From contig JBLDXI010000060.1 in NCBI GenBank assembly GCA_047495785.1, forward strand, positions 248,001 through 312,000: DNA of 64,000 nucleotides. The letters run 5' to 3'. Of this stretch, positions 8,225 through 44,306 are shown piece by piece (position 1 is the first letter of the stretch; the number at the start of each line of letters is the position of its first letter). The stretch comes from Lepidodermella squamata. Its lineage: Eukaryota > Animalia > Gastrotricha. The notes beneath the pieces were generated by a model. It saw only the letters and a program-made list of their open reading frames with translations, was not told the origin of the DNA and ran no database searches. The position numbers and the translations under genes are program-made.

Positions 8225-9513
8225 ATGTTCAAATTATACTCGATTGTTCTATTTTTGAAAATAGCCAGCGCAGAATACGTGCCCGAGGAGCTAACTTTTA
8301 GGAACGAAATTGTTGAGAGATGCAAACTTGACCAAAATATTCGCCCTGTTTTACACTTCAATGAGACCCTTCTGCTGAACGCTTCTTTCGTCGCCTATCG
8401 ATTCTGCGGGATAGGAACACAAGAGGAATGGTAAGACATTTTCGAAGATTGTATGTGCGAATAACGTGCGATCATAGGCTTTGCGTTGTTGGAGAGGTTT
8501 GGATGGAGTGGAATCATCCGTGTGCTTAATGGGACGGCTCTAATACAAACGTTGAATGGATTGAAATGCGAGGCAGTGAAACCTGGTTCCCTCTCATCAT
8601 GCATTACAACAACTGGGATGATATGGGATACATGGACACGTGAGTCACTATACATTGCTATGATCTATGATGCATAAGGAACAGAATTCCATTTTAATCA
8701 GTGTTGCGCAAGGAGGAGTCGTAAATTACAATAAAAATGGGCACGTCGAGATGGTCAGCATTGCAATGTTTCAATCATTCTGTGAACTTGAGTAAGGCAC
8801 TTTTTTTAAGCTATCCATACCTTTAGTCCTTCATTCAAAATACTAGCGTTATCAAATTCCCATTTGACGAGCAAAATTGTTCGGTAAGACTGGACTCGTT
8901 TTACGGGTTGAATCAAGTCGATATGCGCCTCAGTGCCGACCCATTACGTTTCGATAATTACGGCAGTTTCACGACCAGCATGGACATGTGGTATTTGGTC
9001 GCTAGCTACGCTGAAAGGCACGAAAGTGAGGACGATTATAAAGCGAAATACGCCAACGTCAAATTCGTCTTCACAATGCGTCGCAAACCAGCGAGTTACA
9101 TCGTCATTATTTTCATCCCGAATCTGTGTCTAATCCTGCTTCTACTTTCGTCCGGCTTCATGCCGCCCGAAAACCCGGATCGGCCGACTTACTGCATCAC
9201 AGTGGTGCTGGCCTACACAGTGGCCTACTCGACAGTCAGCTCGTTGATTCCTGGTTCGGCTGCTGTTCCGCATATCATTGTATTCATAACGCATCAGCTG
9301 GTCATAAGTACGCTGTGCTCGATCTACTGTTTAATCGCCTGTGATTTGGCAACGCGCGAGACATTCCATCGCCAGAAAACCATACCACTTTATGGTAAAA
9401 ACAGACATTTCAGCATCTCCGTCATTCGACTGATGGATGCGATATTCTTCGGAGTTTTGACGTCAGTTGACTTTATTTTAGCCGTGCTGTTTGTCTTGGT
9501 CATAACTGGGTGA
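8225..9513 (+). pseudogene. Divergent Cys-loop ligand-gated ion channel subunit (LGIC1) with an in-frame premature stop
   Basis: 4 exons; Cys-loop CELDVIKFPFDEQNC; four TMs. Exon 2 reads CCG TGT GCT TAA TGG (TAA at 8527-8529) where paralog LGIC2 has AGG. Confidence 0.75.
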
Positions 9514-9865
9514 TCGAATTTCAATAAATCCCTCAAAAACACGGGCTTAATTCATAGTCACATTTATTCATGGAGACATTTAACATGTTTGCATGATGAT
9601 TCAGCAAAGCGAGAGCTCGATCAGCTTTCTGCTGACTGACGTGAATGCCAAATTGATTGACCGCATAATAATTTTCGGAATGTCCGTGTCAGTCCTGCAT
9701 TCATTTCGGATTAAGTATCAGCTATCCCCATTTTTATTTACTGATTAATGTATTTTATTGGTTGACAAACTAGCTTGGATGTGTGTTCATGGAATTATTA
9801 ATTAGGAAATCGGTTTGTAATGCCATTTTCGATATAGACGTTTCTCAATGATAAGGCCCTGAATG

Positions 9866-10903: not shown

Positions 10904-10996
10904 TTTACGTTTCATGAATTGGAAAACAAATTATTGTTTGGCTCTTGGGTCTATGCAACGTCTTTTGCAATGTGCATGACACTGGCTTTAGCATGT

Positions 10997-11184
10997 TCAA
11001 CCCAGGTTCGGTGTGTTGTTCCTACAAGCGGAATAATACACTTCTGAATTGAACATAATGTTGTTCACATAAGGAGCACAGTACATCCTGAGAATGCGAT
11101 ATTTGTCAAAAACGCAGTTTCAGTAGGAGCGGGTCTGAGTAGAGCTCAAGGAAATCCTTTGAGACATAAGGATCGGCGTGAATC
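10997..11184 (-). pseudogene. Orphan decayed last exon of the dispanin-like family
   Basis: Aligns with 2657-2850 but carries a small deletion (gcggg^tctgag) and has no upstream exons. Confidence 0.75.
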
Positions 11185-11240
11185 GTGAATGAAGCATGAT
11201 TAAAGCAACGGCATGATGTGGTAAACGAACATTATTCGAA

Positions 11241-11779
11241 ATTACGATGAAATTCGAGAAGGTTGATTCAACGTAGTTCGTTTGTAATGGTTATGACAAA
11301 GACAAGGGCCAGGTTCCACGTTGATAACGTCTCATTTCAAAAGTGCATTGTCTGAGTTTTCTAAGCCTTGCATCGCAAGAGAAACCTTCAACTGATAAGT
11401 CACAGGAACTTCGGTAAAGCAGGCATTTTGTGAAGGGAGCTTGAACAGCCCCTAGTTTTTCGATAGTAATCAGAGAGTAGGTACGGTGAGTAGATTGGGA
11501 GTCGTTTTAGATATTACTCAAACTCAATTATATCTGGGGCAGCTCGTCAGTGTTCCATTCATTATAGTAAAGTTTCCGGTGCCATTTCAATGACATTCGA
11601 AAATTTAACCCAGATCCCGTGTATCATTCCTAACGGCCCACTTATCCACCGGAGTATTGAACATGATGTTGTTCACGTATGAAGCACAGTATCTCGTCGG
11701 ATTGTGGTATTTGTTGTAAAGGCAGTCGCAGTAGAAGCGGGCGTTGTCCGAGTAGAGCTCGAGAAAATCGTTCGAGATG
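11241..11779 (+). repeat. 539-bp direct repeat, left copy, abutting the 3' LTR
   Basis: Identical by eye to 20735-21273; contains the 3' end of dispanin-like copy 4. Confidence 0.95.
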
Positions 11780-11972
11780 TGTAATATCCGGCACGGTACG
11801 GATACCACACGGGTTCGATATAAAGAGTAAATAACAGTCAGGCAGAAATGATCCAAAACTCCTCATTTTATTGTTATTGTGTTTCAGTATTTATACTGCG
11901 GCACGCAGGCCGCTTATTGGTTGGTATGCGGACCAATCGCGCTCGACTTGCGTGTCGCGCGTCCGCATAGCA
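11780..11972 (-). repeat. 3' LTR (193 bp)
   Basis: TGCTATG...ATTACA on the minus strand; preceded by a short purine tract GGGGAATG (11973-11980). Confidence 0.95.
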
Positions 11973-12126
11973 CATTCCCCAGGTGAAATAGTGCTTTACT
12001 CCTGGAAAGCGGGAAAAGCGAAAGGAGTGTAACGGCAAGAGAAAAATTCGAAAATGATATTGTGAGAGAATTTACAATAAATACGATCACTGGTAAATAT
12101 ATATACAAACTTCGTGATTTTGATTT

Positions 12127-14253
12127 TCAATAGTAGAAGCGCTTTTTGCGCGGCTGTGGTTTTGGTTCCGCTTCATTGGCTTTGTCGAGCGGAATGGCCG
12201 TTGACGGTGTTTCGTATCCTGGCGGTTGTGGGGCGGTTGGGACTTGAAGTGTCGGCATTATTGTCTGGATTTGGAGCGGATTTGGAGGGCGATTTCTATT
12301 GCAGATGAGGTAAATGATTGCGACGGTGTTCAGTGTCAGTATGAGAGAATTCGCTCCGGTTGGGAGAATCGATAGCAGCGCTGAGTGGGTGTCGTTGGAG
12401 GAGCCGATTTGTCCAACGTAGATACTCATCAGCTGCGTGAAGAGACCTAATTGGGCCGAGCTGGCGCTGATATTTTCGACGAGCCGCAGTGTTGTAGCAT
12501 CATTCCGGTTGAACTCGTCACGCATGGTTGAATCCTTAAGGCTGGCGACGATTTTATCGATATTTTTGCTGTGTTGGGTCGGGTAGTCGCTGGTATTGGG
12601 GTCAAGTAGCTTTAATCGACCCGACTCGGTGACCGTTAGTATCTCTTGGCGCAGATCCTCGTCGCATTCAAAGGCCGATGGGTGTAGTTCGAGGTCGCCA
12701 ATTTTAATGATGTGGTTGCAAGAGAGGTGGAAAATGTGGCCACTTTGCGAATATTTTCGGCTAAAAATTTGTTTTCTGGCGGTGCCATTAACGCGCCAGA
12801 GTGAGACAGTCGCCGGTTTTTGAAGGAGGAACGAGCTGTGGTTGAGTCGCACAACATCGCTGGCTTGTTCGCACCAGTTGAACTCGGCTTTCGAGCTGAT
12901 AACGGGGTCGAGAGCTAAGGCGTGCTCGGAATCAGCGACGAGGCCGGTCTGTTGTAGCCAGTCTGGTGTCGTGGAAATATCGCAGAATTCAAGTGGGCAG
13001 ACGATTTTGTGTGGTGAAATTGTGGTACAGGCGTCGAGACAGCTGGTAGGAAATAAGCGGACGGGCTGGTCTGAGCATTGGATGGCGGACATGCCGATGT
13101 AGACAGATCGCGGGGCCGTTAAACAGCTGCGGTTGCCAAGCAAGCTGATCGGGGACAACGCGATGATGTTGCAGACCGAGTTTCTTATTATCGGAAGTTT
13201 CGCTCGAATTGTAACGTCGATGACATCGGGTTGATCGGCGCCGGTGATGGACATCCAGGCCGAGACAAACAATGGGACACCCTGGGTTAGTAATTTGACC
13301 GTTTCGTTGTGCCTGGGTGAGATTTGTAGCTGGCGGATGATTTTAGTCGCCATGGCCTCGGTCATTTCATAGGTACCGAACGAGCCATCGTTTATGCCTA
13401 CTCGGATGCGTTCGACATGCGCGAACTGGTCACGCATCGCTGCCTGCTTTGTGAAGTGAAAAGCAGTCAGTTTATTGAAGTTGTGCCACTTCTGCCGATC
13501 GCTGGTGTATTCGCTGGTCAAATTTATGAGCACATCTTCCACGGCTTGCAGACGTTGTCCTAGCCGGTGGGTTTGTTTCGCCAGCAGCATTGTGGCGTTG
13601 CCAATTTGTCTGATTTGAGTCTCATCCTCTTTTAAAGCAGCCGTCGCTGCGTAGAGGGCTTTCTTCGTATTTTCGTCAGTGGTTGAGCAACCGTTGTGTG
13701 AGAATAGTTCGTTGATGCCACGTAGAACTATCGAGGAGCAGATCCAGTCTAAGTCACGCCTGGCGCGGTATCGTTTCCCAGTCACTGTCGACGAGGCGGT
13801 CAGCTTCGCGGTCGACGGCTGGCACTGAGTGGCCCACTGCGACAAACAGTCGAACTCTGAGAATCCGAACGGCGGTATCGGCGTACACCATTTTCCGAGA
13901 TAGGCGGCACATGATTTCAATTTGTCCCAAGGCGACGGAGCGAGCGATGTCCCAGTTTCCTCCCAAAAATCGAGTACGTGTTGAACTTCCTCCGGATAAA
14001 ATTGGCGAATAAATTTCGGCTTCTGAAACTCAACTTGCATATTCAAGGCGGTTAAAATCACGTCGTCGAACATGTAGACCAGCTGTTTCTTAGTGCCTTT
14101 GAGCAATGTCTGCGGGAAAATCACGTGGTCAGAAGTGAAAGCGTCCGTGTTAAGTTCGATTTGCCGTTTTGAACGAGTAGCGCTGGCTGAAGAAATTAGC
14201 GAAGCGGCGAGTGTGGCTACGGCAAGCCACAGGCGAAGGCCAGTAAGCGACAT
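12127..14253 (-). CDS. env: Envelope glycoprotein, class I fusion-protein architecture (708 aa)
   Basis: Signal peptide, RSKR and RYRARR furin-type sites, putative fusion peptide, long heptad repeat, Cys-rich domain, N-glycosylation sequons, C-terminal TM and cytoplasmic tail; lies between pol and the 3' LTR. Confidence 0.88.
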   Translation of the reverse strand: MSLTGLRLWLAVATLAASLISSASATRSKRQIELNTDAFTSDHVIFPQTLLKGTKKQLVYMFDDVILTALNMQVEFQKPKFIRQFYPEEVQHVLDFWEETGTSLAPSPWDKLKSCAAYLGKWCTPIPPFGFSEFDCLSQWATQCQPSTAKLTASSTVTGKRYRARRDLDWICSSIVLRGINELFSHNGCSTTDENTKKALYAATAALKEDETQIRQIGNATMLLAKQTHRLGQRLQAVEDVLINLTSEYTSDRQKWHNFNKLTAFHFTKQAAMRDQFAHVERIRVGINDGSFGTYEMTEAMATKIIRQLQISPRHNETVKLLTQGVPLFVSAWMSITGADQPDVIDVTIRAKLPIIRNSVCNIIALSPISLLGNRSCLTAPRSVYIGMSAIQCSDQPVRLFPTSCLDACTTISPHKIVCPLEFCDISTTPDWLQQTGLVADSEHALALDPVISSKAEFNWCEQASDVVRLNHSSFLLQKPATVSLWRVNGTARKQIFSRKYSQSGHIFHLSCNHIIKIGDLELHPSAFECDEDLRQEILTVTESGRLKLLDPNTSDYPTQHSKNIDKIVASLKDSTMRDEFNRNDATTLRLVENISASSAQLGLFTQLMSIYVGQIGSSNDTHSALLSILPTGANSLILTLNTVAIIYLICNRNRPPNPLQIQTIMPTLQVPTAPQPPGYETPSTAIPLDKANEAEPKPQPRKKRFYY

Positions 14254-14334
14254 CGAAATTCGTTAATGAGTAAATATCAAGAAGTATTTACAGTTCGAAT
14301 AAATGGTTGATTAAATTTTTCGCTCAAATAAAAT

Positions 14335-17300
14335 CTATACAGTAGGAGAAGAATCTGTATTGTTTGACGATTGTTTCTTTCTCGAAATTTTGGTGATTTG
14401 TGTTCTTCGAGTGTGTGCCTTGCCGGATTTCGGCGATGTTTGAACGACGGGGTTGGCGAATGTTACACGCGTGCGAAGGTTATACGGCTGATGGACGACC
14501 GTAGCGTCAAGATCTGACTTATTGAGCGAGTAGTTTCTGTCGGAGGTGACGCTAGTTGAGGACTTTTCAGGCGTCGTCACGCTTGATTGATTTTTCTCGG
14601 GTGACGAGGCTGGACGGTGTTGCGGGGCCACCGATTGCGGTTGGACAGGTGGTACAAGGCTAACCAAGTCCATGTCGAACTGGAATGGTGTTGGTCGTCG
14701 GTGGAATCCTGGCGATGCTGTCAAATGGCCAGTGTTTTGCATTCGAAATTTGTGGGCTGGTGTTGACGTTATTATTGGACTGAAATGGTCGATGTTTGAC
14801 GGTGCTGACATGGATGAATGGCGATTATCTTCGTCTGAGGTAGACGGTGCTGGCCCAGTTATTATTGGCGGTGACGGCATTCTGGGCGGTGTTTCAGGCA
14901 ATTCTGACGTGCTTGGGGTACGTCGTCGTGGTACCGGTGGCGTTGTTGGCGTCGTAGTCGCCGACGTCGCGGTTGACGGCGTTGTACTTGCGGTCGTTGT
15001 AGTCGGTGTTGTACTTGTAGAAGTCGCCGTTGTAGTACCCGAACTGGCCGAGGTCGGCCTTTTCGCACTACGGAGTATGTACCCACCCGTCGTGAAATTG
15101 TTGTCACGGGTTGGCTCATGGACAATCTGGCGGCTAAGTGTCTGGCGAAGATCAGGTAACGGCGACGCTGCGGCGGCGGGCGGTCGCGGCGCAGTCGACG
15201 CAGGCGCCGCAGCGCCGGGCGGCGCACTAGACTTGGTAGCGCTTTTCGTCGACGAACGGGCCGACTGCTGCGCTTGTGAATAGCGATCAGCCGTGGGGAA
15301 ATCGCGCAACCAGGCCAACTTGAGGCGGTTGCGATGGGCAAGGATATCACGACCGGACAGGTCAAAGAAGCGAATAGCGTAAGTAACGGGCGAAACTCGA
15401 GCCACGACGGAATACGGGCCCTTGTAGCGAGATGCGAATTTCGGTATCACATCGGGCCGGTTACTTGGCACGTGGAGGTAGACAAGATCGCCGATATCGA
15501 ACGGCTCGCAATTTCCTGAACTGCGATCATAGCGCTCTTTCTCACGAGCACGCGCGAGTTGGAAACGAGTTCGAACGTCGTCGAAAGCGCGACGGAGTTT
15601 GTCATACAAGCCGTAGGCATGAGTTTCACGCAACTCGTTCTGAGTCTTGGGCTGGGACGCAGGCTTCTCGGCGGAGCACTGCCAGTCCATAGCCAACTTG
15701 GGCATGTGACCTAGCATAAGATATGCTGGTGGGTGGCGATGAGTCGAATGGTGAGACGAATTGTAGCCGGAGCAGCAACCCTTGACGAAGCGGCACCAGT
15801 CGAGGTGCTGGCCGGGCACGACGTATTTCGCAATGCAGTTATTCATGACTAAATTCAAGTGTTCGCAATGGCCGTTAGTCTGCTGGTGATAGGCGGAGCT
15901 TTTAATACGACGAATCGCAAACGCATCAGTCACGTCCTCGATGAGCTTGGAGATGAAGTAGCGGGCGTTGTCATTGAGCAAAGCACGCGGGCTACCGAAA
16001 ATGTAGATCCAGTCGAGCAATTTCTCAATCACGGTTTCGGACTTAATATCCGGAATGGGCTCCCACAGCGTGAAGCCACTGAAATGATCGGAAATGATGA
16101 GAATATAGCGCATTCCACGACGAGACGTAGGGTATGGACCGGCTACGTCCCAGGTGAGAAGCTCATTCACGTCATGCGAGAGGATGGGCTCCATCGGAGC
16201 ACGTGGATGTTTTACAGGGTGATCACGAATTTGGCACACCGCGCATGATTTGACGTATTCAGCAGTAATTTCCTCGTAATTGCGGAAATAGAATCGATCT
16301 TTTAAGGTGGATAGGGTGCGTTCAACGCCGAAATGACATTTCTCGTCATGCATAGCGTGAAGCACGGTGACGATGAGATTCTCAGGTACGACGATCTGGT
16401 AACCCGATTCAGAGGCAGGGTAGTAGCGACACAACAAGCCATCAGGCGCTATGAAATACTTGCTACGCTGCTTTTGATTGTGACGAAGGCGGCGTTTCTT
16501 GGAGCGACAACGACGATCGGCGGCTTGCGCCGAAATCAAAACATCGCGAGTCAGGTTAACGCCACACGGCGTGAGGGAGCGGAACGGGTCGCCCTCGTGG
16601 TACGCGTTCTCGTCGACAACAACGTCGTCATCGAAAGTAAGATCGGACGTCATAGCGTTGATGCTGGCCGGGAGTGGCGTAGCTCGATCAGGCATACGCG
16701 ACATCGCATCGGCATTCGCATGAGTTGAACCTCGGCGCGTTATTATATTCAGCGGATATTGTTGTAGGATCATCAGGTAGTTGGACAACCGACCTCCGGT
16801 GTCCTTCCAGGTGTTCAAAGTACGAAGAGCAGCGGCGTCAGTAATGACGTCGGTGGTAATCGAATTCAAACCCGGCGAGATGTAAGGCTTAATCTGCTTC
16901 AGCCCGTACAGGACGGCAAGAACCTCACGTTCACAACTAGAATAATTGCGCTCGGCCTTAGTCAGATTTCGAGAACCGAAAGCGACTGGGCGCCGGGTAC
17001 CGTCGTCCTGGTCTTGTTCGAGAACGTAGCCGAGACCGGACCCCGACGCGTCAGTCGATAAAATAAATTTCTTGTCAAACTGAGGAAAGGCCAAACAAGG
17101 CGGCGAGATCAACGCCTTTTTGAGCTCATTAAAAGCGTTCTCGGCATCCTTATTCCAGTGAAAGTTGTTCTTACGTTGTAGCTCGTATAACGGAGCTGCG
17201 ATCATCGCAAAATTCTTGATAAATCGCCGATAATATCCGGCTAACGAGGTAAAAGCTCGAAGTTCGCTAACCGTCGTAGGGACGGGAAAATTCTGGACCT

Positions 17301-19017
17301 TCGAAACTCGGTCCCGAAAGATAGATAAACCATCCTGGCTAATAGTGTGGCCAAGATAGGTGATGGAGCGACGAAAAAGTTGGCATTTCGAACCCTTAAT
17401 TTTCAAGTTCATTTTACGCATGCGCTCAAGCACGACGCGGAGATCATGAAAATGTTGTTCTTTATTCGGGCTGAAAACTAGAATATCGTCGAAATAAGTG
17501 GCGACGATGCGGCCAAGTAAACCAGTCATGCAGAACGTGAGCAGACGGTTCCAATAGGCCGGGGCGGTTTGAGCACCGAAAGGCATTCTATTCATGGTCC
17601 AGGACCCTTGGGATGATCTGAACCCTAAATATTGCTTTGAATCTTCGGACACTTTCATGTGAAAATAAGCCTGATTTATATCAATAGCTGAGAAAATGCG
17701 TGCTTTCGACAATAAATCAAACTGGCTCCAAATTTGCGGTATTGGGTGTGAGCCGTCATTCACAGTCATGCTATTTAGGCGGCGAAAATCATGGGCTAGG
17801 CGCAGTGAACCATCCTTTTTCCTCAGGGCAAGGAGGCAGCTACTATACGGCGTAGCGGCCGGCTCAGCAATGCCGTGTTTAACCCAGTCTTGTATTTCCT
17901 TCTCAACCATTTCCCTCTCATGATGCGACTGACGCCGAAGCGGCTGAATGAACGGCGGGCCTTCGACCTTGACCTTGAACTCAAGGGCATCGCACAGACC
18001 GATATCCAGCCTATGGCGCGCGAAACAATCCTTGAATTCGCTCAACAAACTACGCATTCTACGGCGTTCATCAGTGGATAGTTCCGACTTTTCCAAGTCG
18101 ACATCGGGCTCCCAGTCATCGCGGGCGTCGGCCGGCGGCGGCGACGGCCGTTTGGATGACTGGCGGTTACGATCAGCGCCTATTATGTCTATGTGGACAC
18201 CCTCGACGAGAAAGGCGGCGACTTTTTGGCCTTTATAGATTTTCACAGGTGATCGCCCGGGGTTGAGTAACTCGACCCAAATACGACCCTCATCATCTAC
18301 CTTGGAAATTGAGCGTGAGACGACAAATTCGCGCTCATGATTTTGCGTGTCGCTAGGCTCGTCATGTAAATTATCACTAACGACGGTTTTTCCCGTAAGA
18401 CCATGACCCGTAATGCGTGCACGGACGCGGATGGGCTTACCCGGCGGAAGAACTACATCATCCAAAGACGCTGCACGCAAATCCGGATGCGTGACTGCGT
18501 TTATGGCGTACGGTGAATACGGCGCGGCGTGTAACGGAATAGAACCCGCGTCATCACGCAGAAAAATAACATTACGAGAATTGCTTATACTGTCGGCGAA
18601 TTTGTACGTAAAATCGTGACCTAACAAGCCGTCGGCATGCAAATTCCGAATGAAATAAAACTGGTGTAAAAATTCGTGTCTACCGAAGCGTATCGGGATA
18701 GTCGCCTTGCCCAAAACTTGCAAGGGCTGGTTATCAGGCCCGTTGGCTTTAGCGGGCTCAAGGCGAATACCAGGGTAAAGAAAGCGGGCATCGATGCAAC
18801 TATGAGTCGCACCGGAATCGAGAAGCATGGCAACATGCCGAAGTGAGCAACTATCATTTTCAGCGACGTCAACTAAATCCATGTGAGCGACGAGGCCGCT
18901 CGGAGCGTGTGAACAAGAAGAAGACGGTAAAGTAGTGACAGATGAAATAATAGCGGGACAGGTGGCATCGGCGGAGGCGTGTCCGGTCCCATCGGACGGC
19001 CTCCTTAATAGTTTAAA
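14335..19017 (-). CDS. pol: Pol polyprotein (protease, dUTPase-like segment, RT, RNase H, integrase, GPY module, long S/T/P tail), entered by -1 frameshift
   Basis: LLDSGAT protease, YFDD RT, STDASG RNase H, HHCC zinc finger, DDE core, KGPY module; the -1 frame is open from the slippery site to the first Met at 18882. Confidence 0.95.
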   Translation of the reverse strand, partial: FKLLRRPSDGTGHASADATCPAIISSVTTLPSSSCSHAPSGLVAHMDLVDVAENDSCSLRHVAMLLDSGATHSCIDARFLYPGIRLEPAKANGPDNQPLQVLGKATIPIRFGRHEFLHQFYFIRNLHADGLLGHDFTYKFADSISNSRNVIFLRDDAGSIPLHAAPYSPYAINAVTHPDLRAASLDDVVLPPGKPIRVRARITGHGLTGKTVVSDNLHDEPSDTQNHEREFVVSRSISKVDDEGRIWVELLNPGRSPVKIYKGQKVAAFLVEGVHIDIIGADRNRQSSKRPSPPPADARDDWEPDVDLEKSELSTDERRRMRSLLSEFKDCFARHRLDIGLCDALEFKVKVEGPPFIQPLRRQSHHEREMVEKEIQDWVKHGIAEPAATPYSSCLLALRKKDGSLRLAHDFRRLNSMTVNDGSHPIPQIWSQFDLLSKARIFSAIDINQAYFHMKVSEDSKQYLGFRSSQGSWTMNRMPFGAQTAPAYWNRLLTFCMTGLLGRIVATYFDDILVFSPNKEQHFHDLRVVLERMRKMNLKIKGSKCQLFRRSITYLGHTISQDGLSIFRDRVSKVQNFPVPTTVSELRAFTSLAGYYRRFIKNFAMIAAPLYELQRKNNFHWNKDAENAFNELKKALISPPCLAFPQFDKKFILSTDASGSGLGYVLEQDQDDGTRRPVAFGSRNLTKAERNYSSCEREVLAVLYGLKQIKPYISPGLNSITTDVITDAAALRTLNTWKDTGGRLSNYLMILQQYPLNIITRRGSTHANADAMSRMPDRATPLPASINAMTSDLTFDDDVVVDENAYHEGDPFRSLTPCGVNLTRDVLISAQAADRRCRSKKRRLRHNQKQRSKYFIAPDGLLCRYYPASESGYQIVVPENLIVTVLHAMHDEKCHFGVERTLSTLKDRFYFRNYEEITAEYVKSCAVCQIRDHPVKHPRAPMEPILSHDVNELLTWDVAGPYPTSRRGMRYILIISDHFSGFTLWEPIPDIKSETVIEKLLDWIYIFGSPRALLNDNARYFISKLIEDVTDAFAIRRIKSSAYHQQTNGHCEHLNLVMNNCIAKYVVPGQHLDWCRFVKGCCSGYNSSHHSTHRHPPAYLMLGHMPKLAMDWQCSAEKPASQPKTQNELRETHAYGLYDKLRRAFDDVRTRFQLARAREKERYDRSSGNCEPFDIGDLVYLHVPSNRPDVIPKFASRYKGPYSVVARVSPVTYAIRFFDLSGRDILAHRNRLKLAWLRDFPTADRYSQAQQSARSSTKSATKSSAPPGAAAPASTAPRPPAAAASPLPDLRQTLSRQIVHEPTRDNNFTTGGYILRSAKRPTSASSGTTTATSTSTTPTTTTASTTPSTATSATTTPTTPPVPRRRTPSTSELPETPPRMPSPPIITGPAPSTSDEDNRHSSMSAPSNIDHFSPIITSTPAHKFRMQNTGHLTASPGFHRRPTPFQFDMDLVSLVPPVQPQSVAPQHRPASSPEKNQSSVTTPEKSSTSVTSDRNYSLNKSDLDATVVHQPYNLRTRVTFANPVVQTSPKSGKAHTRRTQITKISRKKQSSNNTDSSPTV
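18955..19017 (-). promoter_or_regulatory. -1 ribosomal frameshift signal (UUUAAAC plus predicted pseudoknot)
   Basis: T TTA AAC at 19017-19011 in gag phase, 6-nt spacer, stem GGAGGC/GCCTCC plus GTCCG/CGGAC, loop GGGAC complementary to downstream GTCCC. Confidence 0.85.
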
Positions 19018-20465
19018 TGATCGCCACGCTGTTCACGCGCGTCATAAGACAAACGCGGCTGATAATCACGATCGCGCGACGGAGTACGGCGCATGCCGCG
19101 CTGATGATAGGGCGAGTGACTAGAACGGTAGTCATCGCGAGAACGACACTGATCGGCATAATGACCAGGGCGGTGGCATTTATCGCAAACAGGGGTGCGA
19201 GGACGGCGATCGTCCCGCTGTTGTAGCAAATCGCGCATCTTGGAACGGCACTCGGCCTCGACATGGCCGGGCTTCGAGCAATAATAGCAGGACGGGCGCG
19301 AACTACCACGCCGATTATCATTATTAGAAGTGTTGTTATTATTATTACCGTTATCGCGGCTGCGGTAGGCGGACCGGTTGTTGTAACTACCACGGCCCTT
19401 GTCGCTGTAGCTCGGCTTGTTGCGACCAAGCTCCTGAACCTGCGCGGTCAGCGCGTTGACAGCTTGAATCAGCGCCGTTTCGGTCGGCTCAGCCTTAACG
19501 ACGGCGGCAGCAGCAGGCGGCGCCGCAGTGGCGGGCGCAGGCGCAGGCGGTGCCAACGAGGCGGCCGCGCCTGGCGCGTAGTGCGGGGCGAGCGCGACCG
19601 GGGCCGGCGGCACATATAGAGGCGTACCTAACGAAGTCGCCGTCACGTGGGTGACCGGCGGCGGCGCGGCGCCAGGCAGGCCAATGGGAAAACCGGCATG
19701 GTTAAGGCCGAATGACGGCTGAGCATAAGGCTGGGGATACGAGGGAGTGTAAGAGACATGGCCGAACCCGGCTGGAAGCAGGGCCTGGGCGCCGGCAGGG
19801 CCGACGCGGATCGAGGTATCCGCGACCTCGGCGAGGCGCAATAACTCCTCGCACGTTTGAGGTACGCCAAGCATAGCCATACGCTCACGAATAGCAGGCA
19901 AAATGCCGAAATAGACCCGATTAACAAGGTCCTTGCTAGTGTTTTCGGGTTCGCCACGCCCGGAATCAATCCACAAACGGCGAATAACGTCATAATACTG
20001 GCGAACGGTCTCGCCAGGGTATTGAGGGCGAGAATAAAACTGCATTGAGGCTAACACGGTGTCCGGCGCAAGGCCAGACGCGGCGAGAAGCGCCTTCCGC
20101 GCCTCATCAAAAGTAGTAAAACCCGAATAGTCAATAGTCGCCCACACCCGCTCAAGTTTGTTCGACAGAAACAAGGGCAGCATGTGGAGGACATGTTGTA
20201 ACGGGTGTAAGTGATTATCAGTGTCGCAAATGTAAGGCGCGACTTTAGCAAAACGACCCCAGGACGAAACGAACTCGTCGTAGGAATCGCCAGAAATCTG
20301 GCCGACACGCACGAGCGCCAGCTCGATAGGCATGGCGAAGGCGGCGGCCGCAGTAGTAGGCGCCGGCGGCGCGGGACGGCCAGGCGTAGCGCCCGTGACC
20401 ACGCCAAAACCGGGAACACCACCAGACAGAACAGACCCAGCAGGGCCGGAGGAGCCGGATGCCAT
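19005..20465 (-). CDS. gag: Gag with two CCHC zinc knuckles
   Basis: First in-frame ATG after the PBS at 20465 (MASGSSG); capsid-like QYPGETVRQYY; CYYCSKPGHVEAEC and CDKCHRPGHYADQC. Confidence 0.93.
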   Translation of the reverse strand: MASGSSGPAGSVLSGGVPGFGVVTGATPGRPAPPAPTTAAAAFAMPIELALVRVGQISGDSYDEFVSSWGRFAKVAPYICDTDNHLHPLQHVLHMLPLFLSNKLERVWATIDYSGFTTFDEARKALLAASGLAPDTVLASMQFYSRPQYPGETVRQYYDVIRRLWIDSGRGEPENTSKDLVNRVYFGILPAIRERMAMLGVPQTCEELLRLAEVADTSIRVGPAGAQALLPAGFGHVSYTPSYPQPYAQPSFGLNHAGFPIGLPGAAPPPVTHVTATSLGTPLYVPPAPVALAPHYAPGAAASLAPPAPAPATAAPPAAAAVVKAEPTETALIQAVNALTAQVQELGRNKPSYSDKGRGSYNNRSAYRSRDNGNNNNNTSNNDNRRGSSRPSCYYCSKPGHVEAECRSKMRDLLQQRDDRRPRTPVCDKCHRPGHYADQCRSRDDYRSSHSPYHQRGMRRTPSRDRDYQPRLSYDAREQRGDHLNY

Positions 20466-20520
20466 TAGACCGTAAAAACGAGAAAATGAGTGTGATGTGG
20501 CGGTAAAAGCAACAGAAAAA

Positions 20521-20535
20521 CCACTTCTGACACCA
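20521..20535 (-). promoter_or_regulatory. Primer binding site, tRNA-Leu type
   Basis: TGGTGTCAGAAGTGG, 6 nt downstream of the 5' LTR; matches the 3' end of eukaryotic tRNA-Leu(CAA) as I recall it. Confidence 0.8.
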
Positions 20536-20541
20536 AAATAG

Positions 20542-20734
20542 TGTAATATCCGGCACGGTACGGATACCACACGGGTTCGATATAAAGAGTAAATAACAGT
20601 CAGGCAGAAATGATCCAAAACTCCTCATTTTATTGTTATTGTGTTTCAGTATTTATACTGCGGCACGCAGGCCGCTTATTGGTTGGTATGCGGACCAATC
20701 GCGCTCGACTTGCGTGTCGCGCGTCCGCATAGCA
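20542..20734 (-). repeat. 5' LTR (193 bp) with CCAAT, TATAAATA (20657-20650) and AATAAA (20634-20629)
   Basis: Identical to the 3' LTR by eye. Confidence 0.95.
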
Positions 20735-21273
20735 ATTACGATGAAATTCGAGAAGGTTGATTCAACGTAGTTCGTTTGTAATGGTTATGACAAAGACAAG
20801 GGCCAGGTTCCACGTTGATAACGTCTCATTTCAAAAGTGCATTGTCTGAGTTTTCTAAGCCTTGCATCGCAAGAGAAACCTTCAACTGATAAGTCACAGG
20901 AACTTCGGTAAAGCAGGCATTTTGTGAAGGGAGCTTGAACAGCCCCTAGTTTTTCGATAGTAATCAGAGAGTAGGTACGGTGAGTAGATTGGGAGTCGTT
21001 TTAGATATTACTCAAACTCAATTATATCTGGGGCAGCTCGTCAGTGTTCCATTCATTATAGTAAAGTTTCCGGTGCCATTTCAATGACATTCGAAAATTT
21101 AACCCAGATCCCGTGTATCATTCCTAACGGCCCACTTATCCACCGGAGTATTGAACATGATGTTGTTCACGTATGAAGCACAGTATCTCGTCGGATTGTG
21201 GTATTTGTTGTAAAGGCAGTCGCAGTAGAAGCGGGCGTTGTCCGAGTAGAGCTCGAGAAAATCGTTCGAGATG
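20735..21273 (+). repeat. 539-bp direct repeat, right copy, abutting the 5' LTR
   Basis: Identical to 11241-11779 by eye. Confidence 0.95.
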
Positions 21274-21946
21274 AAAGGATTAGTGTGATTCACCATGAAC
21301 CAACTGATAAACAATTGTCAGTTACAGACGAAGACTTAAACATATCCTTGCAAACACTTACTCTTTATAGGCTACTTTTGGTGGGTATGTCATTTTCAAG
21401 GCATCACACGGACTTAGAGTCGTCGTAGTACCTGGATAATCGGCGGGGTGAGAGTTGATCACTACGAGTCCTACAGCGCTGAAACCTAACATGAATAATC
21501 CCAACGTGCACGTCAAACTTAGGTAATATGCGATTTTGTAAGGACCCTTGATAGCGTTATCTCTCGCCATTTGTTCTGGACTCCACAATAACGGCGGCCC
21601 AGGCGGCGAGACGTAGTTTTCTGGTCCCACTACCATTGGCTTCTTCCAAGCACAAACAATTGCAGGGATTGCGCAGCACCAAAGACCGGTGAATAATGAA
21701 CAAATAGACCAGCATCGTGCGCATGATTTGAGCTGTGCAAGTGGCATAGCTGCCAGGGAGAAGCGGGTTCTGCGGTTATTGATGATTATCACGCTGAAAA
21801 GATCTCACGTAACACAACGGCAAAAAATATGTTTTAATAGCACCATACTTTTGTGTGGCGCCCATTGAATTCGCCTGGTTCCAAGATGGCTGTGAAACCT
21901 GAGGAGAATGACCCGGGGTGTTCTGAGTTTGAAAGCCTTGATGCAT
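21099..21946 (-). CDS. CD225/dispanin-like membrane protein, copy 4 (3 exons, intact)
   Basis: MHQGFQTQN... exon 1; exons 2-3 homologous to copy 1 with the same intron positions. Confidence 0.6.
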
Positions 21947-22266
21947 CCTCACCAAACTTTTAAATTCTTTACCTCCCAATGAAAATCAAAATCCTATTAT
22001 TGAGTGTGAAAAACATTCATTCGCAGTACGTGGATTATGTTATCTAATTGCTTGTTAGCTCCTTTTTGCAGTGACAGATACGCGTTTTAATTTAAATAAA
22101 ACTTGCGTGGGCTTCAACGGCTCGCAATTATAGTTTGGTTCAATTTTCCGAAGTCGACGCTTCCTTTTATCGATACCACGCTTATTGGTGGTATTACTAT
22201 GAGTTCTAGAGCCTCCTATGGTTCTCAAAATGATGAACGCATCATTTAACTTCCCTTTCTCAAGTA

Positions 22267-22333
22267 GTCTGAGTAGAGCTCGAGAAAATCCTTTGAAACA
22301 TAAGGATCAGCGTGATTTACCATCAACCACCTG
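22267..22333 (-). pseudogene. Short remnant of a dispanin-like last exon
   Basis: ~67 nt matching 2798-2864, including the splice acceptor. Confidence 0.6.
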
Positions 22334-23298
22334 TGAGCGTGTAGCCATTCTGCGGACCTGGCTGCATCTTCGCCAAGCTTCAATGTTCTTGACCGCACGA
22401 TGAAAATTCAAAGCCTATTCTTGATTGTCCAACAATGTCATTCGAAGTTATTATATTGCCTAAAGTTATATATCGCTTTGTCGCCTGTGTGAAGTAACAA
22501 ATAATTTAATTAAAAAATTTGCGAATCTCTCAACAGCTCGAAGCTTCAGTTTGGGTTTAATTTCCTGCTTTCGAAGCGTTTCTCTCGTTCTGTAGATACC
22601 GCGCAAATCTTTGGTATTGTGAGCTCCATTATTTCGCGGACATTACTCTGTAGAGTGGTTCGCGAAATAATGCTTATAAGGCTTAAGGCTTATCCAAAAA
22701 ACAGTAAACTTTTTCAGCAATGCTCGGCATTTTCGCCTGCAGAGCCTTTATCGAGCTCCATACGGCACGCAAATACCACAAATGAATCACACTGCCATAA
22801 AATGTTGTGAATGACCCAGAAGTCCTCTTTTTTCGCCTTTAACCTTCATCAACCATTAATCAGGGAGTGGTCCTCCGCTGTTATCTATCATTGGGTGGGG
22901 CTGTATCAAACGGTATTTCAGTATTGCAAATTAAGGTTCGCAGCTCGAGAGTTTTCTGTCAACTGTTAACTTTCAAAGACTTTCAAAGTGGCAATACAAA
23001 AGAATGAATTATGACAAAATGTTGTTGGGAGAGAAATTTCCGCTTCAGTAAGGATACAACGATCAAGGTTCCTGTTCGAGGTTATTACTGAATACGATGT
23101 TCTCGAATTCCTTTCGTTTGATAGCATCAGGTTATGGAGAAAGCCTGTTTATTGTTCGTCAATATCCCCAAATGGTGAATTCATTTAATCATCGATTGAA
23201 CTACGACCTGTGTTGATCAGGAATAAATAAAAGAGAACAGTCTGGTGGTTATTGCCATAAGAAAAATCGGATGAAAGGTTTTTCAGTGTTGTAGAGAC

Positions 23299-24595
23299 AT
23301 GTTTAAATTATACTTGATGGCGATATTTCTGAATATAGCCTTCTCAGAATACGTGCCTGAAGAGCTCATTTTCAGGAATGAAATTGTTGAAAGATGCAAG
23401 CTTGACCAAAAGATTCGCCCAGTTGTATACTTCAATGAGACTCTCCTTTTGAACGCTTCCTTCGTCGCCTATCGATTCTGCGGAATAGGAAATCAAGGAG
23501 AATGGTAACTTGTTTTCCAAGATTGCTTCAAGATTCTAAATCTGTGATCATACACCAGGCTTTGCGTTGCTGGAGAGGTTTGGATGGAGTGGGATCATCC
23601 GTGTGCTAGGTGGGATGACTCCAATACAACCGTTGAATGGATTGAAATGCGAGGCAGCGAGACTTGGATCCCACGCATAATGCACTACGACAGTTACGAA
23701 AGCATTGATTACATGGACACGTAAAACCCTTCATTGCTATGATACATAAATTAATTGAATTACTTCAATAATACGCTAGCGCTTCGCAAGGAGCGGTGTT
23801 AAACTTCAACAGAAATGGGCATGTCGAAATGGTCAGCATTGCAATGTTCAACTCATTTTGCGAACTTGAGTAAGGAATCTTTCTTTAAGCCAACCATAGA
23901 CTTAGTCCATAAGTTTGCAACATACTAGTGTTGTCAAATTCCCATTCGACGTACAAAATTGTTCGGTAAGATTGGACTCGTTTTACGGGTTGAATCAAGT
24001 CGACATGCAACTCAGTGCCGACCCATTACGTTTCGATAATTACGGCAGCTTCACGACTAGCATGGACATGTGGTATCTGGTCGCGAGTTACGCTGAAAGG
24101 CACGAAACTGAGGACGATTACAGATCGAAGTATGCCAACGTCAAATTCGTCTTCAAAATGCGTCGCAAACCTGCAAGTTACATCGTCATTATTTTCATCC
24201 CGAATCTGTGTCTAATCCTGCTTCTACTTTCGTCCGGCTTCATGCCGCCCGAAAACCCGGATCGGCCGACTTACTGCATCACAGTGGTGCTGGCCTACAC
24301 AGTGGCATACTCGACAGTCAGCTCGTTGATTCCTAGTTCGGCTGCTGTTCCGCATATCATTGTATTCATAACGCATCAGTTGATCATAAGTACGCTGTGC
24401 TCGATCTATTGTTTAATCGCCTGTGATTTAGCAATGCGCGAGGCATTCAAACGCCAGATAATCGTACCACTTTGTGGTAAAAACAAACATTTCAGTATTT
24501 CCGTCATTCGACTGATTGATGCGATATTCTTCGGAGTTTTGACGTCAATTGACTTTATTTTAGCTGTGTTGTTTATCTTGGTCATAACTCGGTGA
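23299..24595 (+). CDS. Divergent Cys-loop LGIC subunit (LGIC2), intact paralog of LGIC1
   Basis: Signal peptide, 4 exons, CELDVVKFPFDVQNC, M2 PDRPTYCITVVL, short M3-M4 loop. Upstream 22850-23298 is homologous to 7770-8224. Confidence 0.9.
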
Positions 24596-24748
24596 TGGGT
24601 GATCGAATTCCAATAAATCCATCGGAAGATTGAGTCATATTCATGTTTTATTAAAGACAGCGGCTCGCATGCTTATTTAACACAGCGATAGTTCGATTGA
24701 CTGTCCTGGCATTATTTTGCTCAACCAAATAATAGCTTTTTTGAATGA

Positions 24749-39089: not shown

Positions 39090-41966
39090 TTATAGAAAAA
39101 ACAGCCATGAAGCAGAATCGTGAGAGAATCGCTTCTCAGATCTCTCATGTGCAGTCTGTGAATAGAAGGTGTCGTATTCGTGGCACACCGCACATGATTT
39201 GACGTATTCAGCAGTAATTTCCTCGTAATTGCGGAAATAGAATCGATCTTTTAAGGTGGATAGGGTGCGTTCAACGCCGAAATGACATTTCTCGTCATGC
39301 ATAGCGTGAAGCACGGTGACGATGAGATTCTCAGGTACGACGATCTGGTAACCCGATTCAGAGGCAGGGTAGTAGCGACACAACAAGCCATCAGGCGCTA
39401 TGAAATACTTGCTACGCTGCTTTTGATTGTGACGAAGGCGGCGTTTCTTGGAGCGACAACGACGATCGGCGGCTTGCGCCGAAACCAAAACATCGCGAGT
39501 CAAGTTAACGCCACAGGGCGTGAGGGAGCGGAACGGGTCGCCCTCGTTGTACGCGTTCTCGTCGACAACAACGTCGTCATCGAAAGTAAGATCGGATGTC
39601 ATAGCGTTGATGGAAGCCGGGAGCGGCGTAGCTCGATCAGGCATACGCGACATCGCATCGGCATTCGCATGAGTTGAACCTCGGCGCGTTATTATATTCA
39701 GCGGATATTGTTGTAGGATCATTAGGTAGTTGGACAACCGACCTCCGGAGTCCTTCCAGGTGTTCAAAGTACGAAGAGCAGCGGCGTCAGTAATGACGTC
39801 GGTGGTAATCGAATTCAAACCCGGCGAGATGTAAGGCTTAATCTGCTTTAGCCCGTAAAGGACGGCAAGAACCTCACGTTCACAACTAGAATAATTGCGC
39901 TCGGCCTTAGTCAGATTTCGAGAACCGAAAGCGACTGGGCGCCGGGTACCGTCGTCCTGGTCTTGTTCGAGAACGTAGCCGAGACCGGACCCCGACGCAT
40001 CAGTTGATAAAATAAATTTCTTGTCAAACTGAGGAAAGGTCAAACAAGGCGGCGAGATCAACGCCTTTTTGAGCTCATTAAAAGCGTTCTCGGCATCCTT
40101 ATTCCAGTGAAAGTTGTTCTTACGTTGTAGCTCGTATAACGGAGCTGCGATCATCGCAAAATTCTTGATAAATCGCCGATAATATCCGGCTAACGAGGTA
40201 AAAGCTCGAAGTTCGCTAACCGTCGTAGGGACGGGAAAATTCTGGACCTTCGAAACTCGGTCCCGAAAGATAGATAAACCGTCCTGGCTAATAGTGTGGC
40301 CAAGATAGGTGATGGAGCGACGAAAAAGTTGGCATTTCGAACCCTTAATTTTCAAGTTCATTTTACGCATGCGCTCAAGCACGACGCGGAGATCATGAAA
40401 ATGTTGTTCTTTATTCGGGCTGAAAACTAGAATATCGTCGAAATAAGTGGCGACGATGCGGCCCAGTAAACCAGTCATGCAGAACGTGAGCAGACGGTTC
40501 CAATAGGCCGGGGCGGTTTGAGCACCGAAAGGCATTCTATTCATGGTCCAGGACCCTTGGGATGATCTGAACCCTAAATATTGCTTTGAATCTTCGGACA
40601 CTTTCATGTGAAAATAAGCCTGATTGATATCAATAGCTGAGAAAATGCGTGCTTTCGACAATAAATCAAACTGGCTCCAAATTTGCGGTATTGGGTGTGA
40701 GCCGTCATTCACAGTCATGCTATTTAGGCGGCGAAAATCATGGGCTAGGCGCAGTGAACCATCCTTTTTCCTCAGGGCAAGGAGGCAGCTACTATACGGC
40801 GTAGCGGCCGGCTCAGCAATGCCGTGTTTAACCCAGTCTTGTATTTCCTTCTCAACCATTTCCCTCTCATGATGTGACTGACGCCGAAGCGGCTGAATGA
40901 ACGGCGGGCCTTCGACCTTGACCTTGAACTCAAGGGCATCGCACAGGCCGATATCCAGCCTATGGCGCGCGAAACAATCCTTGAATTCGCACAACAAACT
41001 ACGCATTCTACGGCGTTCATCAGTGGATAGTTCCGACTTTTCCAAATCGACATCGGGCTCCCAGTCATCGCGGGCGTCGGCCGGCGGCGGCGACGGTCGT
41101 TTGGATGACTGGCGGTTACGATCAGCGCCTATTATGTCGATGTGGACACCCTCGACGAGAAAGGCGGCGACTTTCTGGCCTTTATAGATTTTCACAGGTG
41201 ATCGCCCGGGGTTGAGTAACTCGACCCAAATACGACCCTCATCATCTACCTTGGAAAGTGAGCGTGAGACGACGAAGTCGCGCTCATGATTTTGCGTGTC
41301 GCTAGGCTCGTCATGTAAGTTATCACTAACGACGGTTTTTCCCGTAAGACCATGACCCGTAATGCGTGCACGGACGCGGATGGGCTTACCCGGCGGAAGA
41401 ACTACATCATCCAAAGACGCCGCACGCAAATCCGGATGCGTGACTGCGTTTATGGCGTACGGTGAATACGGCGCGGCGTGTAACGGAATAGAACCCGCGT
41501 CATCACGCAGAAAAATAACATTACGAGAATTGCTTATACTGTCGGCGAACTTGTATGTAAAATCGTGACCTAACAAGCCGTCGGCATGCAAATTCCGAAT
41601 GAAATAAAACTGGTGTAAAAATTCGTGTCTACCGAAGCGTATCGGGATAGTCGCCTTGCCCAAAACTTGCAAGGGCTGGCTATCAGGCCCGTTGGCTTTA
41701 GCGGGCTCAAGGCGAATACCAGGGTAAAGAAAGCGGGCATCGATGCAACTATGAGTCGCACCGGAATCGAGAAGCATGGCAACATGCCGAAGTGAGCAAC
41801 TATCATTTTCAGCGACGTCAACTAAATCCATGTGAGCGACGAGGCCGCTCGGAGCGTGTGAACAAGAAGAAGACGGTAAAGTAGTGACAGATGAAATAAT
41901 AGCGGGACAGGTGGCATCGGCGGAGGCGTGTCCGGTCCCATCGGACGGCCTCCTTAATAGTTTAAA
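39090..41966 (-). CDS. pol: Truncated Pol (PR-RT-RH-HHCC) reading into flanking DNA
   Basis: Open 913-aa ORF, slippery site at 41966-41960; the residues after CAVC come from host sequence. Confidence 0.85.
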   Translation of the reverse strand, partial: FKLLRRPSDGTGHASADATCPAIISSVTTLPSSSCSHAPSGLVAHMDLVDVAENDSCSLRHVAMLLDSGATHSCIDARFLYPGIRLEPAKANGPDSQPLQVLGKATIPIRFGRHEFLHQFYFIRNLHADGLLGHDFTYKFADSISNSRNVIFLRDDAGSIPLHAAPYSPYAINAVTHPDLRAASLDDVVLPPGKPIRVRARITGHGLTGKTVVSDNLHDEPSDTQNHERDFVVSRSLSKVDDEGRIWVELLNPGRSPVKIYKGQKVAAFLVEGVHIDIIGADRNRQSSKRPSPPPADARDDWEPDVDLEKSELSTDERRRMRSLLCEFKDCFARHRLDIGLCDALEFKVKVEGPPFIQPLRRQSHHEREMVEKEIQDWVKHGIAEPAATPYSSCLLALRKKDGSLRLAHDFRRLNSMTVNDGSHPIPQIWSQFDLLSKARIFSAIDINQAYFHMKVSEDSKQYLGFRSSQGSWTMNRMPFGAQTAPAYWNRLLTFCMTGLLGRIVATYFDDILVFSPNKEQHFHDLRVVLERMRKMNLKIKGSKCQLFRRSITYLGHTISQDGLSIFRDRVSKVQNFPVPTTVSELRAFTSLAGYYRRFIKNFAMIAAPLYELQRKNNFHWNKDAENAFNELKKALISPPCLTFPQFDKKFILSTDASGSGLGYVLEQDQDDGTRRPVAFGSRNLTKAERNYSSCEREVLAVLYGLKQIKPYISPGLNSITTDVITDAAALRTLNTWKDSGGRLSNYLMILQQYPLNIITRRGSTHANADAMSRMPDRATPLPASINAMTSDLTFDDDVVVDENAYNEGDPFRSLTPCGVNLTRDVLVSAQAADRRCRSKKRRLRHNQKQRSKYFIAPDGLLCRYYPASESGYQIVVPENLIVTVLHAMHDEKCHFGVERTLSTLKDRFYFRNYEEITAEYVKSCAVCHEYDTFYSQTAHERSEKRFSHDSASWLFFL

Positions 41967-43683
41967 TGATCGCCACGCTGTTCACGCGCGTCATAAGACA
42001 AACGCGGCTGATAATCACGATCGCGCGACGGAGTACGGCGCATGCCGCGCTGATGATAGGGCGAGTGACTAGAACGGTAGTCATCGCGAGAACGACACTG
42101 ATCGGCGTAATGACCAGGGCGGTGGCATTTATCGCAAACAGGGGTGCGAGGACGGCGATCGTCCCGCTGTTGTAGCAAATCGCGCATCTTGGAACGGCAC
42201 TCGGCCTCGACATGGCCGGGCTTCGAGCAATAATAGCAGGACGGGCGCGAACTACCACGCCGTTTATCATTATTAGAAGTGTTGTTATTATTATTATCGT
42301 TCTCGCGGCTGCGGTAGGCGGACCGGTTGTTGTAATGACCACGGCCCTTGTCGCCGTAGCTCGGCTTGTTGCGACCAAGCTCCTGAACCTGCGCGGTCAG
42401 CGCGTTGACAGCTTGAATCAGCGCCGTTTCGGTCGGCTCAGCCTTAACGACGGCGGCAGCAGCAGGCGGCGCCGCAGCGGCGGGCGCAGGCGCAGGCGGT
42501 GCCAACGAGGTGGCCGCGCCTGGCGCGTAGTGCGGGGCGAGCGCGACCGGGGCCGGCGGCACATATAGAGGCGTACCTAACGAAGTCGCCGTCACGTGAG
42601 TGACCGGCGGCGGCGCGGCGCCAGGTAGGCCAATGGGAAAACCGGCATGGTTAAGGCCGAATGACGGCTGGGCATAAGGCTGGGGATACGAGGGAGTGTA
42701 AGAGACATGGCCGAATCCGGCTGGAAGCAGGGCCTGGGCGCCGGCAGGGCCGACGCGGATCGAGGTATCCGCGACCTCGGCGATGCGCAATAACTCCTCG
42801 CACGTTTGAGGTACGCCAAGCATAGCCATACGCTCACGAATAGCAGGCAAAATGCCGAAATAGACCCGATTAACAAGGTCCTTGCTAGTGTTTTCGGGTT
42901 CGCCACGCCCGGAATCAATCCACAAACGGCGAATAACGTCATAATACTGGCGAACGGTCTCGCCAGGGTATTGAGGGCGAGAATAAAACTGCATCGAGGC
43001 TAACACGGTGTCCGGCGCAAGGCCAGACGCGGCGAGAAGCGCCTTCCGCGCCTCATCAAAAGTAGTAAAACCAGAATAGTCAATAGTCGCCCACACCCGC
43101 TCAAGTTTGTTCGACAGAAACAAGGGCAGCATGTGGAGGACATGTTGTAGTGGGTGTAATCGATTTTCAGTGTCGCAAATGTAAGGCGCGACTTTAGCAA
43201 AACGACCCCAGGACGAAACGAACTCGTCGTAGGAATCGCCAGAAATCTGGCCGACACGCACGAGCGCCAGCTCGATAGGCATGGCGAAGGCGGCGGCCGC
43301 AGTAGTAGGCGCCGGCGGCGCGGGACGGCCAGGCGTAGCGCTCGTGGCCACGCCAAAACCGGGAACACCACCAGACAGAGCAGACCCAGCAGGGCCGGAG
43401 GAGCCGGATGCCATTAGACCGTAAATAACGAGAAAATGAGTGTGATGTTGCGGTAAAAGCAACGAAAAACCACTTCTGACACCAAAATTGTGTAATATCC
43501 GGCACGGTACGGATACCACACGGGTTCGATATAAAGAGTAAATAACAGTCGGGCAGAAATGATCCAAAACTCCTCATTTTATTGTTATTGTGTTTCAGTA
43601 TTTATACTGCGGCACGCAGGCCGCTTATTGGTTGGTATGCGGACCAATCGCGCTCGACTTGCGTGTCGCGCGTCCGCATAGCA
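39181..43683 (-). mobile_element. 3'-truncated second copy of the gypsy element (5' LTR 43491-43683, PBS 43470-43484, gag, pol as far as the integrase zinc finger)
   Basis: Near-identical to 16232-20734; homology ends at 39181; no integrase core, env or 3' LTR. Confidence 0.95.
41954..43414 (-). CDS. gag: Gag, intact, copy 2
   Basis: Same length as copy 1 with few substitutions. Confidence 0.9.
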   Translation of the reverse strand: MASGSSGPAGSALSGGVPGFGVATSATPGRPAPPAPTTAAAAFAMPIELALVRVGQISGDSYDEFVSSWGRFAKVAPYICDTENRLHPLQHVLHMLPLFLSNKLERVWATIDYSGFTTFDEARKALLAASGLAPDTVLASMQFYSRPQYPGETVRQYYDVIRRLWIDSGRGEPENTSKDLVNRVYFGILPAIRERMAMLGVPQTCEELLRIAEVADTSIRVGPAGAQALLPAGFGHVSYTPSYPQPYAQPSFGLNHAGFPIGLPGAAPPPVTHVTATSLGTPLYVPPAPVALAPHYAPGAATSLAPPAPAPAAAAPPAAAAVVKAEPTETALIQAVNALTAQVQELGRNKPSYGDKGRGHYNNRSAYRSRENDNNNNNTSNNDKRRGSSRPSCYYCSKPGHVEAECRSKMRDLLQQRDDRRPRTPVCDKCHRPGHYADQCRSRDDYRSSHSPYHQRGMRRTPSRDRDYQPRLSYDAREQRGDHLNY

Positions 43684-44114: not shown

Positions 44115-44306
44115 ATATCGTAAGCGTCGTTGAATAACTCGGATTGCGATGTTTACGTCAGTTTGGTGGTGAGCGGTGACAGATAAAAAGTCTTTTGTTT
44201 TCCCTCTTCATTCAGCCGTTTAAAGCCGTTTTTTACTTGGCACCCGACACCTTGAATCTGAAGTAAACAAGGCTAAATCCGAGTTATTCAACGACGCTAA
44301 CGATAT
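44115..44306. mobile_element. Small MITE with ~31-bp terminal inverted repeats
   Basis: ATATCGTAAGCGTCGTTGAATAACTCGGATT versus AATCCGAGTTATTCAACGACGCTAACGATAT (1 mismatch); a decayed relative at ~44500-44655. Confidence 0.75.

Follow-up and report, generated by a model that had tools for sequence, protein, structure and literature searches.

A gastrotrich Ty3/gypsy-type element bordered by a perfect 539-bp host duplication: a possible single aberrant integration

The question raised by this locus is how a retrotransposon can come to lie between two identical 539-bp stretches of host DNA, given that the target-site duplication usual for Ty3/gypsy elements measures 4-6 bp. The locus is part of a 64,000-nucleotide stretch of contig JBLDXI010000060.1 of the gastrotrich Lepidodermella squamata (assembly GCA_047495785.1, positions 248,001 to 312,000 of the forward strand; hereafter the window), in which an element with long terminal repeats (LTRs) adjoins the last exon of a small host gene, here called gene 4. 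We put the probability at about one half that the arrangement arose by a single recent aberrant integration of one complementary DNA (cDNA) of an active, env-carrying Ty3/gypsy-type element. The features on which the argument turns are as follows, with positions counted from the start of the window.

11241..11779, no strand assigned: left 539-bp host copy, comprising the last exon of gene 4 without the first 30 nt, and 364 bp past the stop codon
20735..21273, no strand assigned: right 539-bp host copy, contiguous with the remainder of gene 4
11780..20734, minus strand: full-length LTR element of 8955 bp, recognised from its LTR pair and open reading frames (ORFs)
11780..11972, minus strand: 3' LTR (element orientation), 193 bp, TG..CA, 100% identical to 20542-20734
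20542..20734, minus strand: 5' LTR (element orientation), 193 bp

That a perfect 539-bp repeat exactly adjoins the LTR termini, as the first-pass annotation of this DNA had claimed, is borne out by exact extension and by reading of the junctions. The host copies match over 539 bp with zero mismatches; exact extension gives 540 identical bases (11240-11779 and 20734-21273), the first of which, an A, doubles as the last base of the LTR. Extension of the LTR pair likewise gives 11779-11972 and 20541-20734, the extra match at 11779/20541 being a chance G. The LTRs (11780-11972 and 20542-20734) start with TG and end with CA, each 539-bp copy directly adjoins a complete terminus of this type, and outside both repeats the similarity falls at once to background. 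On self-comparison, no repeats in the 64-kb window other than the 539-bp pair and the LTR pair were 100% identical, and chance is therefore excluded as the origin of these two. The window contains no Ns and no gaps.

The same block closes the left flank and opens the right flank, i.e. the arrangement is that of a target-site duplication of normal polarity, 539 bp long. A repeat of 4-6 bp was sought both at the LTR junctions and around the composite of block, element and block, and none was found; the 539-bp repeat stands in the place of the short duplication expected of a Ty3/gypsy element. Both LTR ends are joined to host DNA precisely at the terminal CA/TG, with the joints 539 bp apart and not 4-6 bp, and both junctions have the look of integrase products, or at the least of joints formed on processed ends. 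The two members of each pair, block and LTR alike, are identical, and the absence of any difference in the 732 bp of paired sequence compared, which implies a divergence below about 0.4% at 95%, fits one young event without further assumptions. As a separate observation, an identical 7-mer lies near both junctions (11246-11252 and 21270-21276), which we take as chance.

The target of the insertion is a member of a local tandem family encoding small membrane proteins, the parts and relatives of which are listed below.

21099..21747, minus strand: host gene 4, small membrane protein of the tandem family, from ORFs, splice signals and paralogues
21747-21362, minus strand: upstream exon of gene 4, from its ORF
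21361-21304, minus strand: intron of gene 4, 58 nt, GTAAGT..CAG
21303-21099, minus strand: last exon of gene 4, from its ORF; the frames connect across the intron
10986..11184, minus strand: last exon of a paralogue (copy 3), a relic lying immediately to the left of the duplication, from self-comparison
1231-1922: paralogue of gene 4, from self-comparison
2648-3548: paralogue of gene 4, from self-comparison
22264-22333: fragment of the gene 4 family, from self-comparison

The boundary of the right block, between 21273 and 21274, falls 30 nt into the last exon of gene 4, and the LTR junction between 11779 and 11780 falls 30 nt inside the left copy of that exon. The left block is consequently a headless copy of the last exon beside the 3' LTR of the element, whereas the right block completes gene 4, which is intact because this block continues into the rest of the last exon, the intron and the upstream exon. 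Reading of the junctions and exons thus upholds the earlier proposal that the LTR junction lies within the last exon of gene 4 and that the gene stays intact through its duplicated 3' end. One correction concerns the strand: the element and gene 4 are both on the minus strand. The label 'dispanin' given to the host gene is also unsupported: it rests on one paralogue, for which the CD225 match (E 0.044) scores 14 bits against a cut-off of 27, and the exons of gene 4, searched separately against Pfam and by word search, gave no match.

The element itself has all its long ORFs on the minus strand, and gag, pol and the third frame, ORF3, are open, with no break counted.

12127..14253, minus strand: ORF3, envelope-like, 708 amino acids, from translation
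14335..18882, minus strand: pol, 1515 amino acids, open
19005..20465, minus strand: gag, 486 amino acids counted from the first ATG; the frame is open and encodes two CCHC zinc knuckles

Pfam matches in pol were to RVT_1, RT_RNaseH, Integrase_H2C2 and, weakly, rve, and in gag to zf-CCHC; the integrase core (rve) lies under the Pfam threshold, i.e. it is divergent. The protease is marked by a DSG motif in the pol translation and gave no Pfam match. The order protease, reverse transcriptase, RNase H and integrase (PR-RT-RNaseH-IN) in pol, the CCHC knuckles of gag, and identical LTRs ending in TG..CA are all as in Ty3/gypsy elements. The integrase has an H2C2 region, a core and an SH3-like C terminus, and the best PDB match of the integrase region is Ty3 Gag-Pol (7q5b, E 1.5e-13), with D, D and E aligned. 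As candidates for the tRNA primer-binding site and the polypurine tract, a stretch starting with TGG was seen, its first base 6 nt inside the boundary of the 5' LTR, together with a short run of purines adjoining the 3' LTR, the window offering no tRNA for primer comparison. Judged from its sequence, the element is of Ty3/gypsy type, with the gag-pol-env plan of a retrovirus, and is apparently intact. The G+C content of element regions (12000-20000 and 40000-44000) is 50-56% versus approximately 40-45% in nearby host DNA, a composition foreign to the locus.

A single aberrant integration could have produced this structure if the strand transfers had not been coupled in place or in time: one cDNA may have undergone two half-site reactions, or one of its ends may have been inserted by integrase and the other joined by the host. 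The 539-nt stretch between the joints would then have been copied on both sides, by fill-in, strand-displacement synthesis or replication, giving the order host block, element, host block. With one joint in the last exon of gene 4 and the second 364 bp past the stop codon, one complete copy of the gene would have been left, which may be the reason that the insertion survived; joints of the opposite polarity would give a deletion instead of a duplication. We regard this reading as the most economical because one step explains both junctions, the identity of the LTRs and that of the blocks, and we favour it also because all three genes (gag, pol and the env-like ORF) have open frames and the D, D and E of the integrase align to those of Ty3. 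Uncoupled strand transfer had been put forward in the first-pass annotation, together with the idea that it might be a trait of the family. The single-event form of that proposal is retained, given that both ends are TG/CA, that the polarity is normal and that the repeated units are identical; the family trait is without support, and a one-off event, with no demonstrated family habit, is most likely.

Several points weigh against a single aberrant integration. Although the long direct host duplication that adjoins both ends and replaces the short repeat in aberrant integrations is present, the pairing of one canonical end with one host-repaired end is not, both ends here being complete and canonical, whereas experimental cases usually show damage to the second end. 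The element is accordingly a poorer fit to the aberrant class, yet it is kept there because the aberrant end in that class is described as 'often, but not always, truncated' (PMC5041404). Furthermore, this is a single case, known from the assembled sequence of one assembly; exact look-ups of 11 host ORFs, which could have revealed an unoccupied site or the locus in a second assembly, gave no match; and there is only one informative copy for the duplication length of the family (n = 1).

A second copy of the family is present in the window, in the same orientation and within 22 kb of the first.

39181..43683, minus strand: second family copy, with one LTR (43491-43683), open gag and pol cut short once; the env-like gene and the other LTR are absent

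It is 98.6% identical to the full element over 4.5 kb (62 mismatches), with its LTR differing at 1 of 193 positions and the internal region by 1.4%. The differences in pol are mostly synonymous (26 against 8 on the nonsynonymous side), as would be expected of lineages diverging while active. There is no flank repeat around 39181-43683 and no likeness of its flank to the host gene family. The one-ended form of this copy could itself reflect aberrant integration, or a later deletion; with one end missing, it is uninformative on the usual duplication length of the family. Directly to its right lies an imperfect inverted repeat (44115-44530, arms of about 200 bp, 70% identity), which may be a small foldback element or one resembling a miniature inverted-repeat transposable element (MITE).

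The second copy bears on the other ways in which the locus might have arisen. An assembly chimeric between haplotypes would match the observed sequence exactly: two ordinary insertions in the same orientation, separated by 539 bp and carried by different haplotypes or by individuals pooled in the sample, would have been merged by an assembler that switched inside the 9-kb element, which would be identical in both haplotypes, and the presence of two family copies within 22 kb means that the local density of insertions may be high. We nevertheless consider such a chimera unlikely, albeit deserving of serious attention, as it needs two independent insertions of the same orientation within 539 bp, and needs the 539-bp flank and the 193-bp LTR to be identical across haplotypes, when the other LTR in the window differs at 1/193 and its internal region by 1.4%. 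The first-pass annotation had raised the more general prospect of an assembly artefact; simple mis-assembly of a single ordinary insertion could not give rise to the two junctions, in a sequence without gaps or Ns, whereas two real insertions plus a haplotype switch could. Exchange between LTR elements is well known, and homologous exchange inside the element, between allelic insertions at two sites separated by 539 bp, also proposed earlier, would yield the same sequence as a real recombinant. It shares the prerequisites of the chimera and requires a crossover in addition. The check for mosaicism suggested with it gave no block-wise pattern against the second copy, the 62 differences being spread across all fifteen 300-bp bins of the 4.5 kb, although this is a weak test, covering half of the element with one comparator. 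We regard a true recombinant as improbable.

A rearrangement on the host side after ordinary insertion, by template switching or by tandem duplication and loss, might have generated the second copy of the block on the far side of the element, and the locus, a tandem gene array with older duplications, is of a kind that would suit this. Its breakpoint would, however, need to coincide exactly with an LTR terminus, and the by-products to be expected are absent, there being no solo LTR or second element in the window attributable to duplication plus loss, and no short duplication. Moreover, the paralogues, at 71-85% identity, are too diverged to have supplied a 100% copy, and the two sites, compared over 60 bp each, share no target motif above that of shuffled sequences (268/2000). 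We rate this route as very unlikely. We hold a habit of the family to be scarcely credible: the integrase would regularly set the two ends hundreds of bp apart, such that insertions duplicate the target stretch, including exons, and genes that are hit stay functional, through a distinct integration geometry and no accident. In its favour, neither copy in the window is canonical, the first having the long duplication and the second lacking an end, and the integrase core is divergent, lying below the Pfam threshold. Conversely, all three domains usual in an integrase are present, as are the catalytic residues, and the protein aligns to the Ty3 integrase; the truncated copy is without a flank repeat, truncated copies are commonplace, and the habit would be deduced from n = 1.

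Other arrangements were considered but discarded. Had the element inserted into a tandem duplication that already existed, the LTR junctions would still carry a short repeat, and they carry none. The block is not part of longer LTRs, since the order block-LTR ... LTR-block does not make a direct repeat of the composite unit. Unequal exchange between paralogous genes was discounted on account of the paralogues being just 71-85% identical.

If the structure is real, then the locus is a natural germline insertion of integrase type with joints 539 bp apart and both perfect, whereas most of the comparable cases documented to date come from experimental retroviral systems. Such accidents would then be heritable, could duplicate an exon and the 3' end of a gene, and could make a hit in an exon harmless, and they would give mobile elements one way of producing small segmental duplications. 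Pipelines for LTR annotation that require a 4-6 bp duplication would mislabel such copies. Should the locus instead prove to be a haplotype chimera, it would be a useful warning on assemblies around young, polymorphic 9-kb repeats.

The surroundings of the insertion are a patchwork of tandem gene families. Genes in the window include intronless 7tm_7 gustatory-receptor-like genes, pieces of Cys-loop channels, and ankyrin, PI-PLC-X and endonuclease genes, a content that we read as that of an invertebrate and not of a human. Tandem arrays at 35173-36520, 56233-62911 and 50105-55461 consist of the intronless 7tm_7 gustatory-receptor-like genes and Cys-loop channel fragments, which are 65-75% identical, and an old direct duplication of 1.9 kb, with pieces of Cys-loop channels (7700-9534 and 22781-24623, 79% identity), lies on either side of the insertion. 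The 58-nt intron of gene 4, with its consensus donor, and the intronless receptor genes point to a compact invertebrate genome.

Downstream of pol, where an env gene would be expected, the 708-residue ORF3 has the features of a type I membrane glycoprotein: its translation contains a signal peptide, basic motifs of cleavage type, N-X-S/T glycosylation sites and a C-terminal hydrophobic anchor. By sequence it had no match in Pfam, among PDB sequences or by word search, and a full HMMER scan of 1.84 billion representatives returned five relatives, all distant and unnamed. A fold predicted from the single sequence was useless (predicted local distance difference test, pLDDT, 35), whereas a model built on a seven-sequence alignment reached a mean pLDDT of 47.5, with 65-83 in its core. 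The top Foldseek matches of this low-confidence model were the F proteins of respiratory syncytial virus (RSV), human metapneumovirus (hMPV) and parainfluenza virus 5 (PIV5), baculovirus F and chuvirus-type glycoproteins, with probability ~1 but low template-modelling (TM) scores of 0.15-0.34. The modelling suggests that the fold of this envelope-like membrane glycoprotein is probably that of F-type fusion proteins.

Among known systems, yeast Ty3 makes 5-bp duplications at start sites of RNA polymerase III (Pol III). The integrase of the gastrotrich element resembles that of Ty3 (intasome 7q5b) in its H2C2 region, DDE core and SH3-like C-terminal domain; unlike the Pol III sites used by Ty3, the window has no tRNA gene and no other Rfam RNA gene that could be a Ty3-like target. 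With respect to the junctions, the nearest likeness is to aberrant retroviral integrations, in which one end is placed by integrase and host duplications of hundreds to thousands of bp replace the short repeat (PMC5041404). In the non-concerted, one-ended events of this kind reported for avian sarcoma-leukosis virus (ASLV) and for human immunodeficiency virus (HIV) vectors, a host duplication of hundreds of bp is seen with at least one end at the canonical CA, and a second joint on one side of the first leads to duplication, whereas one on the other side leads to deletion (PMC5041404 and work cited there). Those events are, however, experimental and somatic, with the second end usually truncated or rearranged, whereas the present element has both ends perfect, is of Ty3/gypsy type in the germline of an invertebrate, and has no sign of an impaired integrase.

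A direct precedent for a natural LTR-retrotransposon insertion with a long duplication was not found in the literature searched. The human-specific non-classical insertions of human endogenous retrovirus K (HERV-K) are, like the present case, natural germline proviruses with flanks that depart from the short duplication, but they are reported with host deletions and not with a long duplication (PMC3625200). In its coding organisation the element is close to the env-carrying Ty3/gypsy elements of metazoans, the 'errantiviruses' in the wide sense (PMC13524379), with which it shares the gag-pol-env plan, the order PR-RT-RNase H (RH)-IN, near-identical copies that suggest recent activity and, so far as the model of ORF3 indicates, matches to the F-type fold. 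It differs from them in that ORF3 has no detectable sequence match to named families and has just five distant relatives, and in its flanking duplication of 539 bp, a property on which the main text of PMC13524379 offers no comparison, terms for target-site duplication having 0 occurrences there. On the strength of the modelled fold, the element probably fits among the env-carrying Ty3/gypsy elements with an F-type envelope that have recently been catalogued across metazoans (PMC13524379).

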